A stretch of 64,000 bases of DNA from Trichosphaerium sp. ATCC 40318. Its lineage: Eukaryota > Protista > Tubulinea. Made by a program: the position numbers and the translations under genes. Each line of letters begins with the position of its first letter. The stretch's first letter is position 1. Of the stretch, positions 55-54,122 are shown piece by piece. The DNA is taken from the NCBI GenBank assembly GCA_038496445.1, contig JALMLS010000500.1:1-64000 (forward strand), written 5' to 3'. The notes beneath the pieces were generated by a model. That model saw nothing but the letters and a program-made list of their open reading frames with translations, was not told the DNA's origin and made no database searches.

Positions 55-466
55 TTTGCAGCTGTATGGTACTGAAGCTCGCTATTCAGAGCTACGTCAA
101 AAGCTTGTGAAACACATTTTGGCAAACAAAGTAAAATATGCTTGTAAGTTATTTTGAACTAATAATGTAAACTTACTATCCTTAGTTCAGTTCTCGGTTC
201 CTGAAGACATTTATATGCAGTCTGCTGAAACGTATGCAGAATATATGAAGATTGATGGAAATTGGGGAGAGCATCTTGCATTGGTTGGATTAGCTGATGT
301 AAGTCAATTGTATTTGATTTTGTAGTAACAAGTTGTGTAGCTTTTTAAGTTTAATATAACAATATTTTCTCTGAGTGGCCTGTATAGTTTTGGAGCAGGA
401 ACAGGAACTTGGCTTTTGTGTTATTACGGAAATAATCACTATGCATCTGTAAGAAAGATAAAGTAA
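55..466 (+). CDS. OTU-family cysteine protease/deubiquitinase, 3' part (5' end outside window); exons 55-143, 186-298, 341-466
   Basis: Spliced translation LQLYGTEARYSELRQKLVKHILANKVKYA-FQFSVPEDIYMQSAETYAEYMKIDGNWGEHLALVGLAD-LFKFNITIFSL...LLCYYGNNHYASV* carries the OTU QLYG..LR, Y..M...G.WG and terminal HY motifs. GT-AG introns keep the frame. Confidence 0.8.
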
Positions 467-742: not shown

Positions 743-961
743 ACCCTAATTCTATTTAGGGTTGTAAACCTAACCCTAGCCCTAGTCAATATTCATTAGG
801 GTTGTAAACCTAACCCTAGCCCTAGTCAATATTCATTAGGGTTGTAAACCTAACCCTAGCCCTAAAGCAAATTTGCAATTACCAGCCATAACCCTAGCCC
901 TAAAAATGTAAAATAACGATTAGGGTATACCCTAGAAGCCAATTAGAGGTTAGGGTTAGGG
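743..961. repeat. Degenerate interstitial telomere-like repeats in both orientations (left flank of foldback)
   Basis: Multiple CCCTAA/CCCTAG then TTAGGG hexamers, including the perfect palindrome TAGGGTATACCCTA at 921-934. Confidence 0.8.
756..863. repeat. 40-bp tandem repeat (~2.7 copies) built from telomere-like TTAGGG/CCCTAA variants
   Basis: Unit GTTGTAAACCTAACCCTAGCCCTAGTCAATATTCATTAGG repeats with exact 40-bp period. Confidence 0.9.
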
Positions 962-1029
962 ATCTATGCTGTTGCTAAACAGCATGTAGGCAACGTATGT
1001 TGCCGATACTTATACATATAGTATTATGT

Positions 1030-1790
1030 AACAGTGCAAAGCACTGTGTAGAAATATATTGCAAAGCGATATATTATAGGGTCACAACGACAACATTCTG
1101 TAGCGAAGCGGCAAAAAAGCGAAAAACTCATAGAATCCAACAATTTGTAGCGAAGCGGCACGCATGCGGGACCTAAAGTGGAATGCATTATGTAGCGAAG
1201 CAGTAGGCATGCAGAGATTATGGTGGAATGCATTCTGAAGCGAAGCGCCATATTACAAAACCTAATGCGAAAAAAAAATTAAAAGAATCTAAGATACTGT
1301 AGCGAAGCGGTGCGCATGTGACACCTAATATCGGATGCATTATTCAGCGAAGCGGCACATATGCGGTGCCTAAAGTGGAATGCATTCTGAAGCGAAGCGC
1401 TTCATGCGAAAAAAATGAAGAAATCCAAGATATTGTAGTGAAACAACAATATGATACCTAAAGTGGAATGCATTATTTAGCGAAGCGGTACATGCATAAA
1501 CCTCAAAGTGGAATGCATTTTGAAGCGAAGCGCTTTATGCAAAAAAATGAGAAAATCCAAAATATTGTATGAAACAAAAATTGTAACATTTAAAAGTGGA
1601 ATGCATTATTTAGCGAAGCGGTACATATACAAACCTCACAGTGGAATGCATTCTGAAGCGAAGCGCTTCATGTGGAAAAATGAGGAAATCCAAAATATTA
1701 TAATGAAACAAAACAAATTGCAACTATTAAAGTGGAATGCATTATTCAGCGAAGCGGTATGATAGTGGATAAGATTATGTAGCAAAGCTA
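1030..1790 (+). repeat. ~45-bp satellite-like array with 3-monomer (~133-150 bp) higher-order structure, left arm
   Basis: Core GTGGAATGCATT(A/C)T..AGCGAAGCG. Perfect GCGAAGC at about 1103, 1150, 1195, 1240, 1302, 1347, 1392, 1480, 1525, 1613, 1658 and 1749. Confidence 0.9.
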
Positions 1791-2129
1791 CATATTGAAA
1801 TATGTAATATAATAATACCAATAATAGTGTAACCTTAAAAATCCCTAAAACAAAGGAATTTAGTGGGATTTATATCCAAAATCCCGTTTTCATTTTACCA
1901 CTGCATACATTGACTTGTTGTATTATTAAAAAGCAAAAATAAACCCATCAAAAACACATATATGCCTGTACACGATAAAGCAATAGCTAGCATTGATACA
2001 CATAGAATATGTCCTCAAATGCTTTGCTATGGCGACCTATCGTGACATGCGTATACATGTGCGACGAGGTTCAACGAAAAACTTTCAAAGAAAAATTAGG
2101 GATTTAAAAAAACCCTTTAAAATCAAAAA

Positions 2130-2180
2130 AACCCCTTTCATTAGGCTTTATTTAATTAATAAAGCCTAATGGAAGGGGTT
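2130..2180. repeat. Near-perfect ~23-bp-stem hairpin in the foldback core
   Basis: AACCCCTTTCATTAGGCTTTATT-TAATT-AATAAAGCCTAATGGAAGGGGTT, one mismatch. Confidence 0.85.
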
Positions 2181-2463
2181 AAAAAAAAAAAGGAGGAAGT
2201 TGGTACCTTTTTTCTGCTTGGGTATTCTCCTAGCATTTATAGGCTTTTCAGAGCCCTTAGATGTAGGAGAGTCTTCTGTGTTGTTGCTCATCCTGTGTTT
2301 TGATAAAGTCAAACTAAGACAATATCACGTGACGGCGATTGAATCACACATGCATATGTATGTCAATACCAGAGAACACCTACGTTCTTTGAAATTGATT
2401 AATAATTATAAAAAAAAAAAAAGTGTACATACATTGTTATTTATCAAATAATAAATAAACATG

Positions 2464-2620
2464 CACTTTAGTTTTATTATGTCAATTTCATTGAATCTCT
2501 TCAAAGTTTTTATAATTCAAACATACACTTTAGTTTTATCAAGGCTATTTCACTGAATCTGCTTAAAGTCTTTGTAATTCAAACAAACACTTTAGTTTCA
2601 TGCACAATTTCAAACATGCA
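2464..2620. repeat. ~62-bp degenerate tandem repeat (2.5 copies)
   Basis: CACTTTAGTTT...ATTTCA.TGAATCT..T.AAAGT.TTT.TAATTCAAACA recurs at about 2464, 2526 and 2588. Confidence 0.75.
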
Positions 2621-2819
2621 ATTGACATTGTTGATGACAATTGTGTATGTGGACAATAGTAAGAAAATAATGAGAAAAATGCAAAATTATGACAAGAACT
2701 AATCTTTATGACCCTTGTAACATACGAAAATTCCTACATGCAATAGCATGTGGCAAAATTAGCTCGAAACGTTACTAACAAGCAAATGTAAGGTTTGAAA
2801 AAAAAAATAGTAGCAGACT

Positions 2820-2941
2820 CCTAAACCCTAACCCTACGTTTTTCCCTAGCCCTAACCCTAGCAATTGAACATCGATTTTAGGGTTTGGGTTAGTTTACAT
2901 TAGGGCTTTGCCCTAATTGTGATTAGGGTTAGGGTTGGGTT
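2820..2941. repeat. Internal block of telomere-like repeats, CCCTAA run followed by TTAGGG run
   Basis: CCTAAACCCTAACCCTA...CCCTAGCCCTAACCCTAG, then TTTAGGGTTTGGGTTAG...TTAGGGTTAGGGTTGGGTT. Confidence 0.8.
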
Positions 2942-3172
2942 ACACGAAATTCTGTTTTGATTTGACTTTTACACACATAAAACTCCTTTAAGGTTTTATA
3001 TTTATACTCTATGTTATTGTAACGTTATACTTGACATTATTTTACTTACATTTATACTTTTTAATATATTTGTACTTTTTTACTTTAATATTACACAACC
3101 ATTTATATTATATTATTGTATTTTTTATGGTTACACTATTATTGGTATTATTATATTACATATTTCAATATG

Positions 3173-3933
3173 TAGCTTTGCTACATAATCTTATCCACTA
3201 TCATACCGCTTCGCTGAATAATGCATTCCACTTTAATAGTTGCAATTTGTTTTGTTTCATTATAATATTTTGGATTTCCTCATTTTTCAACATGAAGCGC
3301 TTCGCTTCAGAATGCATTCCACTGTGAGGTTTGTATATGTACCGCTTCGCTAAATAATGCATTTCACTTTTAAATGTTACAATTTTTGTTTCATACAATA
3401 TTTTGGATTTTCTCATTTTTTTGCATAAAGCACTTCGCTTCAAAATGCATTCCACTTTGAGGTTTATGCATGTACCGCTTCGTTAAATAATGCATTCCAC
3501 TTTAGGTATCATATTGTTGTTTCACTACAATATCTTGGATTTCTTCATTTTTTTCGCATGAAGCGCTTCGCTTCAGAATGCATTCCACTTTAGGCACCGC
3601 ATATATGCCGCTTCGCTGAATAATGCATCCGATATTAGGTGTCACATGCGCACCGCTTCGCTACAGTATCTTAGATTCTTTTAATTTTTTTTTCGCATTA
3701 GGTTTTGTAATATGGCGCTTCGCTTCAGAATGCATTCCACCATAATCTCTGCATGCCTACTGCTTCGCTACATAATGCATTCCACTTTAGGTCCCGCATG
3801 CGTGCCGCTTCGCTACAAATTGTTGAATTCTATGAGTTTTTCGCTTTTTTGCTGCTTCGCTACAGAATGTTGTCGTTGTGACCCTATAATATATTGCTTT
3901 GCGATATATTTCTACACAGTGCTTCGCACTGTT
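3173..3933 (-). repeat. ~45-bp satellite-like array, right arm (inverted copy)
   Basis: CGCTTCGCT...AATGCATTCCAC units mirror the left arm. Confidence 0.9.
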
Positions 3934-4001
3934 ACATAGTACTATATGTATAAGTATCGGCAACGTACGTTGCCTACATGCTGTTTAGCAACAGCATAGA
4001 T

Positions 4002-4268
4002 CCTAACCCCTAACCCTTAACCCTAATTGGCTTCTAGGGTATAACCCTAATCGTTTTTATCATTGACTAAGGTTTTAAGCTTTGAATAAAGAGTCCAAAG
4101 ATTAGGGTTAGGGTTAGGTTCGTAACCCTAAGTAAAATTAGGGTAGGGCTTAAGATCTGTGAGTGCTTTGCAAACCATAGCTACAATTAGGGTTAGGGTT
4201 ATAACCCTATGTTATATTAGGGTTAGGGTTATGTTAAATTCTACCATTTAGGGCTAGGGGTTAGGGTT
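4002..4268. repeat. Degenerate telomere-like repeats (right flank of foldback)
   Basis: CCCTAA-type then repeated TTAGGGTTAGGG, with palindrome TAGGGTTATAACCCTA near 4194-4209. Confidence 0.8.
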
Positions 4269-4426
4269 GTAGCTGTATGTTTGAGTTTGGTTAATACTTG
4301 GAAAATAGTGTTTTATACAACTTGCAATTAACTTTTGCTTGGTTTTTTTATGAGATTGTTGTATTTTCAAGCTTATGCATTCATATTATACTTTGTATAT
4401 TCTTTTTATAGTTTACAATCACTTAA

Positions 4427-5066
4427 GGGCGTCATCTCAGATTAGTGTTTACTAAATTGTACATGCTTTGATTTACTTTAAACTTTTGCCACACTACAAA
4501 CACGTGTATACACAGCTCTGTGTAAAAAATTGGCTTCGAATATGAACTTCGAGCATTATGATGTGCTTTTTTTTAGCAGTTTTTTTTATCTCAATTGTAC
4601 ATCCTCAGATTTTCCTTAAACTTTATATTCAAAGTCTACACACATATTTAAGGTGTTTATGGCAATATGAGCTTCGAATATAAGGTTTAGGGATTGAATT
4701 TTTCTTATTTTGGAAAGTAAATCTTAATTTAGTATTTTTTCTTTTTTGCACAGGCTTGAATTTGCTTAATACGCTGGTATACGGTTAATGTATGTGTGCT
4801 AAGTGCAGTCATCAAAAATGAACTTCAAATACAGGTTTTGTCTTTAGTAATAATGTAAAATAGCCTAAAATGTGTTTATATGATAGTAAAACGCGTTTTA
4901 GACACTTTTCGGTTTTGGCACATCAGTTTAAGCAGTTTTTTTTTTCAATTTTTCAAAGGCGACCTGTGTTGCTCTAAATCGCTATGGAGGATGCCTTGTG
5001 TGTCTGGAATGTATTGTGTAAAAAGTAGCAAATTCTGTACGCTGGGTCTAATCTGAGAGGACGCCC
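4427..5066. mobile_element. 640-bp non-autonomous DNA transposon (MITE) with 19-bp TIRs and TTAA target-site duplication; Kolobok-like ends
   Basis: TTAA|GGGCGTCATCTCAGATTAG (4427-4445) ... CTAATCTGAGAGGACGCCC|TTAA (5048-5066), 18/19 match. No ORF inside. Confidence 0.85.
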
Positions 5067-5402
5067 TTAATTTACAAATAAACTAATAATGTTAATTGGT
5101 ATTTATGTAATTAAATTATATTTGTAATTTTAACTAATATTGAACACATTTATTATATTAAGCATAAACCTTTATTGCATGAAATAACACTATCGCTTGT
5201 AAGAATATTGCATTAGGGTTAGGTTTTATTATGTATTTGTGTGCTTTTGGTACAATTTTTTGGAAAAAGCACACTATTGTAAGCATATAACATTCATAAT
5301 GCAGTACAAGAATTTGTAGTAACACGACCATTTTGTATATGTTTTATTTTTAATTGCATTTATGAATAACAATTGGATTATGTTATAAACATTGGTTTAG
5401 GT

Positions 5403-21421: not shown

Positions 21422-22334
21422 TTAATGTTTAGACATGTTCGTTTTGATTTGGCCATTCACCAAGGAAGTAAATACACCCACCAAAGGCTCATGTTCTCTG
21501 GCTTTTCCATCAATATATTCACAATGATAACCTACAGTACTGTCTTCTTTAAATATCAGATGGTGTCCGTCTAAACATCCATCTATATAGAACATGTAGC
21601 AATGAAGTGCCCCAGACTTGTACCACCAACGATGCTCACCTACTCTTTTGTCATCCTTGTACCATCCAAGGTGATAACGCTTTTTATTACTATGCCAGAA
21701 CTCTGCCTTCCCATCTAACTTACCTTGTTTGTAGTAACATACAATGCTGGGTTGACAAACAGGGTACACCCACCACTTTGTGAATGCACCATGTTTCTTA
21801 CCATTAACATAAGTTGTATGCTTATACAACTTACCTGCAACAGACCACTCTTTGTAATCTCCATCAAGCATCCCATCTTTATAAAAGCATAACACTCCAA
21901 GCACAACTCTAAGCGTATCATCAAGGGAGAGTTTTCTGGGTCTGTGCCATTCTCGATATTCACCATGTAGCTTGTCATCCTTGTAATTACAAAAAACTCT
22001 AGGACTTCCTTTTGGGTACCACGTTTTGCTCTCGCCTACTTTTAAACCATGTTCAAAAGTACAGTGTCCATCGAATCCCCGTTTGATAAACAGTCCATGC
22101 TTATTTAATTCAGTATCAAATCGTGAAGTGCATGCTGCTTGGAAGGAGAGAAGCGGCCATTGATAATACACGCGATTAATCCAAAACGCAACGTCTGTCT
22201 CAGCATCTAGTCGGAAAATCATGTGCTGAAGCTCCAAAGGTAATGACAGTAAATGCAGGCCTTCAGGAGGATATCTTAAAGACTAGGTGAGTTAAATGCA
22301 CTACTTTTTGTACCATACAATCGCAGATCGGCAT
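21422..22334 (-). CDS. F-box-like plus MORN-variant (YwqK-type) repeat protein; one short 5' intron
   Basis: LLSLPLELQHMIF N-terminus followed by repeated Y.DG.LDG.Y.EW / YVNGKKHG.F.KW units. Confidence 0.8.
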
Positions 22335-53343: not shown

Positions 53344-54122
53344 ATGAATAAGAACTCTACGAACAACTTTGACGCTTTTCTAGAAAGTACAATTATAACA
53401 GGCGATGATATGAGGGCTACATTACTCAAACACTCTGAAAGCAGCATGATAGAATTGTACAAAACAGCAACTAAAAAGCAGTGGGCTAACCTCCAGGCTA
53501 TGCTTAATCGTAGTAGTTCAGTTGATAATGAACTGGCAAAGTCGTTGGTGCTCATAAATCTATTGCAGCTATTACGCGACATGGAGTAGGTAAACAAGTC
53601 GCAAAATATGGTTTATATCTAGACGTATTCAATCAATCACTAATTTCTTAGCGACTTTCCTGGACGTCAAAATTTTATCCTACGTATGCGAGGGCAACTA
53701 AAAGTACACAGGAAACTATTTGTAGGAGAAATGGAAACCAAGAATGCATTCAATAGGTCAGAGAAAAAAACTAGTACAAGTTTTATACTGTAGCTCTCAA
53801 TCTTCCATTTATGGATCGTAAAAAGAGAAAAAAATCGGATACACAAGTTAACAGGCAAACAAAACGCAGACGATTGATAAAGGAAGATAAGGAAGTTAAC
53901 GACGAATGTTTAAATAACTCTGAAGAGAATGTCATTAATAGTGATGAAGAAAATGACGAAGAGGAAGACAAGAAAGTTGAAGCAAATGACGAAGAGGAAG
54001 ACGAGAAAGTTGAAGCTAATGAACAGTGTTTAAATAACTCAAAAGTAGGTACGAGCACTACCTACTCAAAGAAGCAAGAAGAGCAATGGATGGGCAGAAG
54101 AAATGTCGAGAAGCATTTGTAG
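53344..54122 (+). CDS. Hypothetical protein or gene fragment with basic NLS-like and acidic segments; splicing unresolved
   Basis: ORFs 53344-53589 and 53811-54122 read as natural protein. An in-frame 33-bp duplication lies at 53952-54017. Confidence 0.4.

Follow-up and report, generated by a model that had tools for sequence, protein, structure and literature searches.

A non-coding structure of 3.5 kb at positions 743-4268 of a 64,000-nucleotide stretch of contig JALMLS010000500.1 from Trichosphaerium sp. ATCC 40318 (this whole stretch is hereafter the window) raises the question of what kind of genetic element consists of two 0.94-kb inverted arms of short tandem repeats lying between genes. 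A first-pass annotation had noted arrays of the heptamer GCGAAGC in the arms and telomere-like tracts at both outer edges, and proposed either a mobile or extrachromosomal replicon or a yeast-like centromere or origin. Our analysis gives modest preference to a different answer, namely, that the structure, which occupies a short spacer between genes on the downstream side of an OTU-like gene, is a decaying copy of a non-autonomous class II (cut-and-paste) transposon of the foldback type, an assignment made by analogy with characterized foldback elements.

Architecture of the element

The ungapped part of the inverted repeat was located by a repeat scan at 943-1841 and 3122-4020 (899 nt per arm, 98% complementary, 1280 nt apart). 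Once gaps are allowed, the near-perfect repeat reaches 905-1841 and 3122-4064 at ~98.5% complementarity, with small indels in the telomere-like tract, and alignment of arm against arm recovers 13 mismatches across the 882-nt block 960-1841/4003-3122. The junction between arm and middle domain is abrupt at 1841/3122. On the outer side, identity steps down at 905/4064 from ~98.5% in the arms to 73 to 81% in the outer flanks, where similarity is patchy and the percentages refer to aligned pieces only; the number of units also differs between the two outer flanks. The earlier description of ~920-bp inverted arms around a unique 1.3-kb core holds for the arms and for the 1280-nt spacing, but not for the uniqueness of the core, which has a telomere-like block at 2816-2945.

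The domains of the element follow one another as flanking domain, tandem-repeat outer domain, inner domain, and middle, which is the published order in foldback transposons (PMC4079207). Long inverted arms, internal tandem sub-repeats with flanking, outer, and inner domains, and a non-coding middle are all present. The first-pass remark that no standard transposable-element layout applies did not survive this comparison (PMC4079207; PMC3688188); the layout has long been known, and only the repeat motifs are unusual.

Foldback (FB-like) elements include Drosophila FB, Tetris, Galileo (foldback-like, of the P superfamily), sea-urchin TU, and plant foldback elements. The element described here resembles them in the great length of its inverted arms (as much as 1.7 kb in Tetris and 1.2 kb in Galileo) and in the combination of three-part arms (flanking, tandem-repeat, and inner) with the variable non-coding middle of such elements. 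Tetris has long inverted repeats with flanking, tandem-repeat outer, and inner domains around a non-coding middle, and is represented by few complete copies for which no partner has been found (PMC4079207). Most copies of foldback elements are non-autonomous, and their tandem repeats carry protein-binding sites, as demonstrated for Galileo, where the sites of the transposase THAP domain were mapped by experiment inside the tandem repeats of 1.2-kb terminal inverted repeats (PMC3688188). Unlike the known foldback elements, the present one has no sequence similarity to anything retrievable, its telomere-like palindromic end region is the part least conserved between the arms, and its repeated box includes GCGAAGC. 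A Helitron was also considered and rejected, as Helitrons lack terminal inverted repeats and have just one hairpin, subterminal on the 3' side, whereas this element has inverted arms of 0.94 kb.

A repeated bipartite motif in the arms

The window has 25 occurrences of GCGAAGC, whereas 3.62 ± 1.95 would be expected and none of 100 shuffles gave more than 9. All but two of these occurrences (23/25) lie in the arms, 12 on the forward strand at 1103-1755 and 11 on the reverse strand at 3208-3927. This count is inflated by higher-order amplification and arm copying, since the units descend from tandem duplication and each arm is a copy of the other. The 11 to 12 perfect heptamers per arm reported in the first-pass annotation are thus matched by counts of 12 and 11, but the even ~45-bp spacing reported with them is not found: successive left-arm spacings are 47, 45, 45, 62, 45, 45, 88, 45, 88, 45, and 91 nt, several of them thus 62 to 91 nt, and 45 nt is a sub-unit of the array and not a constant spacing. 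That all heptamers of an arm share one strand was likewise borne out (forward on the left, reverse on the right), and it is the automatic outcome of copying a direct tandem array in inverted orientation.

The 45-nt units are grouped into 133-nt repeats (3.2 copies, ~82% matches) and one 152-nt repeat (1.8 copies, 75%). Every 133-nt repeat has as its third sub-unit a decayed copy that lacks CpG. At 64 to 87% identity among themselves, the tandem units are old. Within units, the heptamer forms the center of the 9-nt box AGCGAAGCG, and in 9 of the 12 left-arm units a GGAATGCATT-type box sits 4 variable nt upstream of the heptamer; the two boxes and the variable nucleotides between them make up a bipartite motif of ~25 nt, present ~10 times per arm in a single orientation. 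Measured as per-column counts against a natural copy and not a consensus, the 9-nt box is conserved in 12/12 left-arm units while most other columns score 5 to 9 of 12, a comparison biased by the anchoring of the units on the heptamer. In a unit family defined by similarity, and so free of this anchoring, the exact heptamer is kept in 10 of 11 members. A box that stays intact while neighboring columns drift is the pattern of a putative repeated recognition site, and by analogy with Galileo we infer that the bipartite motif is a multimerized protein-binding site, probably for a transposase.

In a foldback transposon of this kind, three parts would make up the long terminal inverted repeats: an end region of telomere-like palindromes, short palindromes in a cluster, and the domain of tandem repeats. 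The repeated bipartite motifs would provide multiple binding sites for a transposase encoded elsewhere, in the manner of those bound by the THAP domain of Galileo, and this multiplicity would confer specificity in end recognition and help in pairing the two ends. GCGAAGC would be kept as part of the binding site and not for folding as a mini-hairpin, and the telomere-like units would represent an end module specific to the family or, alternatively, an earlier copy of that kind of module that received the insertion.

Table 1. Features of the element and its immediate surroundings
Feature	Position	Strand	Remarks
OTU-like gene, last exons and stop	61-465	+	Frame-2 translation with OTU-type C-terminus and short introns; assigned by reading
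Left outer flank	743-904	.	Degenerate telomere-like palindromic units, mostly CCCTAA/CCCTAG-type
40-nt unit, 2.7 copies, in left outer flank	756-864	.	Tandem-repeat scan
Left arm	905-1841	+	Near-perfect inverted repeat
Left arm, telomere-like inner tract	905-960		TTAGGG-type
Left arm, short perfect hairpins	961-1085		Clustered
Left arm, tandem repeats	1086-1760		45-nt units in 133/152-nt higher-order repeats; 12 GCGAAGC (+)
Left arm, inner domain	1761-1841		Two overlapping hairpins
Middle domain	1842-3121	.	Non-coding, 1280 nt
Right arm	3122-4064	-	Inverted copy of 905-1841; 11 GCGAAGC (-)
Right outer flank	4065-4268	.	Degenerate telomere-like palindromic units, mostly TTAGGG/CTAGGG-type
Separate non-coding element, ~650 nt	4424-5070	.	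23-nt inverted repeats, 22/23 identical; TTAA directly outside both ends

Arm divergence, hairpins, and single-strand folding

The 13 substitutions between the arms comprise 11 transitions and 2 transversions, and 6 of the 13 stand in CpG context. The 9-nt box contains three of them, and one substitution turns GCAAAGC into GCGAAGC. Two left-arm heptamers are without an exact counterpart in the right arm, and one site reads GCAAAGC on the left and GCGAAGC on the right. The stem partners 1060 and 1068 carry different single changes in the two arms, which leaves a mismatch in both; the ancestral pair was probably C-G. The observed/expected ratio of CpG is 1.21 in the arms and 0.81 in the window; CpG was abundant in the motifs at the time of arm copying, and erosion has continued from then on. 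We read this copy as inactive and probably in neutral decay, because the arm differences, largely transitions that include CpG-type changes, break heptamers and hairpin stems.

The same differences bear on whether the inverted arrangement could be an assembly artifact, due to a mis-join or to a chimeric read that folds back. Artifacts in general are known to include inverted duplications, but palindromes of that origin are normally exact and without a spacer, whereas here the arms differ by 13 substitutions and, in their telomere-like portion, by indels as well, a unique 1.28 kb lies between them, and the outer flanks differ in unit number, so that we consider such an origin extremely improbable.

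Perfect hairpins, defined by a stem of at least 5 and a loop of 3 to 5, number 13 in the left arm (9 distinct), against 3.4 ± 1.95 in dinucleotide shuffles and an average of 3.8 in tiles of the rest of the window. They are concentrated at 921-1075 and 1776-1806, and the arm folded as single-stranded DNA (ssDNA) has a z-score of -3.9. Three of the perfect hairpins have different stems around a common GCAAAGC center. GCGAAGC itself is without an extending stem in most units, and the B-type units fold stably into a stem of 7 bp whose loop is AAG, in another register than the heptamer hairpin. The mini-hairpin chemistry invoked in the first-pass annotation is well documented, in that d(GCGAAGC) forms an extraordinarily stable mini-hairpin with a melting temperature of 76.5 C and occurs at the origins of the ssDNA phage G4 and its relatives (PMC13037366). 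A G-to-A change in the loop left no measurable mini-hairpin melting in the octamer series of that study, in whose table the heptamer form is absent (PMC13037366), and for this reason we take the three GCAAAGC-centered hairpins to be ordinary Watson-Crick hairpins. When the two arm copies are compared for preservation of hairpins, the trio with one center and different stems favors it, and the arm changes that break stems and heptamers disfavor it.

This evidence is central to the idea of a mobile or extrachromosomal ssDNA replicon, which would be capped by telomere-like hairpin ends and in which GCGAAGC arrays would serve for priming or recognition. A genuine mini-hairpin known from ssDNA phage origins (PMC13037366), the excess of perfect hairpins over shuffles, the GCAAAGC trio, and telomere-like blocks able to fold on themselves because each runs C-type then G-type would all agree with it. 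We nonetheless judge this idea, which the first-pass annotation had advanced, highly improbable: no Rep, primase, or polymerase gene was found in the element or the scanned frames of the window, the element has no relatives among phages, plasmids, or viral contigs, and the differences between the arms destroy heptamers and stem pairs with no compensation. The heptamer also lacks an extending stem in most units or folds in another register, the G-to-A change at the centers of the long hairpins abolished the mini-hairpin in the octamer series (PMC13037366; heptamer form not tabulated), and the outer flanks fold no better than shuffles. The ssDNA phages (G4, St-1, and alpha3) and the plasmid ssi sites that share this heptamer/octamer chemistry (PMC13037366) carry it as single hairpins in replicons with their own replication genes, whereas here 23 copies stand in a double-stranded chromosomal repeat.

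Telomere-like tracts

With up to 1 mismatch allowed, the TTAGGG dimer has 16 matches in the window against 0.15 expected, and 15 of the 16 fall within 854-4259. Telomere-like sequence forms three blocks, at 744-957, at 2826-2930 in the middle domain, and at 4008-4262, and pentamers of CCCTA/TAGGG reach ~60 per kb in both flanks and 77 per kb in 2816-2945, compared to 0.52 per kb elsewhere in the window. The mixed CCCTAA/TTAGGG character reported earlier for both outer flanks is thereby confirmed, although the tracts are degenerate and have a third counterpart within the middle domain. Each block runs C-type then G-type and so constitutes a palindromic module; orientation within blocks is mixed, with 10 C-type and 6 G-type on the left and 5 C-type and 12 G-type on the right. 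The blocks also have in common the CCCTAG variant and non-telomeric spacers (2906-2930 matches 739-763 at 21/25, and 2877-2899 corresponds to 866-843). The fold of the middle-domain block (2816-2945) has a z-score of -6.0, and those of the outer flanks are close to shuffles (left -0.8, right -1.8, pieces -0.8 to -2).

Neither tip of the element has a uniform outward terminal run of exact telomeric repeat. Because the tracts are degenerate, mixed in orientation, built of palindromic units, linked by shared spacers, and accompanied by an internal third copy, we regard them as one repeat family or module and not as a product of telomerase, and the element cannot be called telomere-capped, as it had been. 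A true interstitial telomere, or healing by telomerase, was considered as well and is ruled out by the mixed orientation and the shared non-telomeric spacers. The recurrence of the module in the middle domain fits the modular, rearranged, or nested pieces of foldback families (PMC4079207).

DNA transposons whose ends bear the host telomeric repeat are known from ciliates, as in Tetrahymena Tel-1/Tlr. The ends of the DNA transposon TBE of Oxytricha likewise carry this repeat, and TBE is placed in the Tc1/mariner family (10.1101/2025.03.17.643836). The tracts described here are unlike those of the ciliate transposons in being degenerate, of mixed orientation, arranged in small palindromes, and also internal.

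The telomere-like palindromes, the five-hairpin cluster, and the GCGAAGC arrays could instead all be working parts of an undescribed eukaryotic element, either one with hairpin or single-strand-processed ends, such as a foldback family with hairpin-type or telomere-mimicking termini, or a non-yeast inverted-repeat centromere or origin, but we give this little credence.

Outside the foldback element, the sole telomere-like 12-mer lies in an isolated TTAGGG-like tract at 5205-5226, ~135 nt beyond the right end of the small element with inverted repeats at 4424-5070. In the JGI metagenomes, a search with the flank unit recovered 45 contigs that have only a ~25-nt palindromic TTAGGG motif in common with the element. 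This palindrome of facing TTAGGG units occurs in contigs of 39 to 67% GC (L118 and 44 others, L119-L162), and L118 carries it twice (4951-4973 and 5352-5374), 401 nt apart, inside a longer direct repeat.

Boundaries, coding content, and further copies

Several results weigh against a mobile element. The outermost 160 to 200 nt are only 73 to 81% alike, compared to 98.5% for the arms, even though termini recognized by a transposase should match best; the low match therefore requires either nested insertion or arm homogenization, and it suggests that the mobile unit is 905-4064 inside an older telomere-like module or that the outer repeats drifted as the arms were being homogenized. At neither candidate boundary did we find a convincing target-site duplication. 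A direct repeat of 10/11 nt (716-726/4235-4244) abuts the outer inverted similarity, and part of it recurs after the core block (2951-2957), so that it may be element sequence; by our estimate, chance alone would yield ~1 such repeat in the flanks searched. At the inner of the two candidate boundaries, only CTAA is held in common, out of register. Tetris, by comparison, has a target-site duplication of 8 to 10 nt, and none is demonstrable here.

Nor was a partner or a relative recovered. Open frames of the element are at most 111 codons long, and they have no Pfam match even at E = 1. Pfam searches detected no transposase in these frames or, within the window's first 50 kb, in 20 of the longest ones (at least 110 codons, or at least 90 in 5.5-20 kb), and no linked Rep, primase, or polymerase was found in the element or among the long open frames of the same 50 kb; the autonomous partner that the first-pass annotation suggested looking for (Rep-helicase, pPolB, or DDE transposase) was thus not found in the element or the scanned frames. 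By blastn, the 64-kb window has no second copy outside the element, and the phage and plasmid records have no match to it. The exact bipartite box has 0 matches in the JGI metagenomes and 0 in IMG/VR, and an arm pseudo-open reading frame (ORF), compared with the protein collection for mis-called genes on other copies, matched nothing. The absence of further copies in the window and in the sequence collections is weak negative evidence. Because no transposase, second copy, clear target-site duplication, or relative in the collections was found, we only infer mobility.

Some of these points also speak for a non-mobile palindrome, in which a minisatellite of 45/133-nt units beside degenerate interstitial telomere-like repeats was duplicated in inverted orientation and has no function. 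Fold-back repair or template switching at small palindromes would provide the route, and intrachromosomal conversion would have kept the arms alike. The structure is single copy in everything searched, it has no target-site duplication that we could find, the step from 98.5% to ~75% at 905/4064 is as expected at the edge of a duplication, and many short palindromes are present that would be able to prime fold-back. This explanation does not account as well for a domain order that fits foldback transposons, for a telomere-like module that is also in the middle domain, for a second inverted-repeat-bounded element adjoining in a region otherwise without repeats, or for the conservation of the putative bipartite binding site across old units, which suggests past selection, and we consider it rather unlikely.

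Three spaced heptamers used as a query of IMG/VR gave only scattered single matches in unrelated contigs, and this lead was dropped; a literature search on the element motifs matched only unrelated primers. Nothing in the element passes the Rfam gathering thresholds, and no tRNAs were found.

Within the middle domain, Tandem Repeats Finder (TRF) reports a 62-nt tandem repeat at 2457-2598 (2.3 copies, 86% matches). A hairpin at 2130-2180 has a perfect 23-bp stem and a 5-nt loop (DNA fold z-score of -7.2 over 2120-2190), and its Rfam matches are miRNA-precursor-like and all sub-threshold.

Genomic setting

The window is eukaryotic, has ~38% GC, and is dense in genes whose introns are short, features that do not resemble human DNA. 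Pieces of DEP, F-box, BTB, Ras, and DNA polymerase alpha proteins are recognizable in it, and it is almost without repeats apart from the foldback element and its 650-nt neighbor. The foldback element begins ~280 nt past the stop of the OTU-like gene. If both inverted-repeat elements are subtracted, only ~0.9 kb of spacer remains up to the next long open frame in this repeat-poor, gene-dense window, from which we conclude that the spacer was inflated by two inverted-repeat-bounded insertions.

These dimensions also bear on a further possibility, that the compact genome has a replication origin here, or a small regional centromere of the inverted-repeat type. The centromeres of Komagataella phaffii have inverted repeats of 2 to 2.7 kb around a core of ~1 kb, one per chromosome (PMC8709784), and a Candida tropicalis study describes a unique core with kilobase-scale inverted repeats in a non-transcribed stretch (PMC7292649). 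A ~1-kb core between kilobase-scale inverted repeats is thus common to these centromeres and the present element, whose geometry is like that of K. phaffii in particular (PMC8709784); in addition, this is the most AT-rich region of the window (33 to 34% GC versus 37 to 40% elsewhere), and it is gene-free for ~5 kb. However, that gene-free stretch was made by the element itself, as the subtraction above indicates, the arms are shorter than in the yeasts and are tandem arrays, and the host is no budding yeast, having many short introns and TTAGGG-like sequence. As the prior for a centromere in a random 64-kb window is low as well, we regard this possibility as quite unlikely.

Significance

If the foldback reading is correct, the element would represent one more foldback-type transposon family, from a eukaryotic lineage absent from protein collections. 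Its use would lie in annotating the source genome, where it would be a likely site of inversions and ectopic recombination. The putative binding site includes one of the most stable DNA mini-hairpins known, and the end modules consist of telomere-like palindromes; should both features prove conserved in further copies, the family would be well suited to the question whether foldback transposases recognize DNA structure besides sequence.

Other features of the window

The ~650-nt element downstream of the right flank is probably a miniature cut-and-paste transposon of another family and not part of the foldback element. Weaker inverted similarity runs a few nucleotides beyond its ends.

Three products of the window were compared with the protein collection; two single-exon products are not on record by exact look-up, and a 289-aa product is without a homologue. 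The DNA polymerase alpha exon has ~41 to 45% identity to animals, chytrids, other fungi, and a stramenopile alike, with one further contig at 51%, and the BTB protein is closest (44%) to an amoebozoan transcriptome and to octocorals. The source lineage appears to be without annotated relatives.

Between eukaryotic genes, an open frame of 286 codons on the reverse strand (21425-22282) has a weak match, below the curated Pfam cut-off, to the repeat variant MORN_2, a type known mostly from bacterial proteins. Finally, a 33-nt tandem repeat at 53945-54022 (2.4 copies, 93%) is in codon phase and probably lies inside an acidic coding region.

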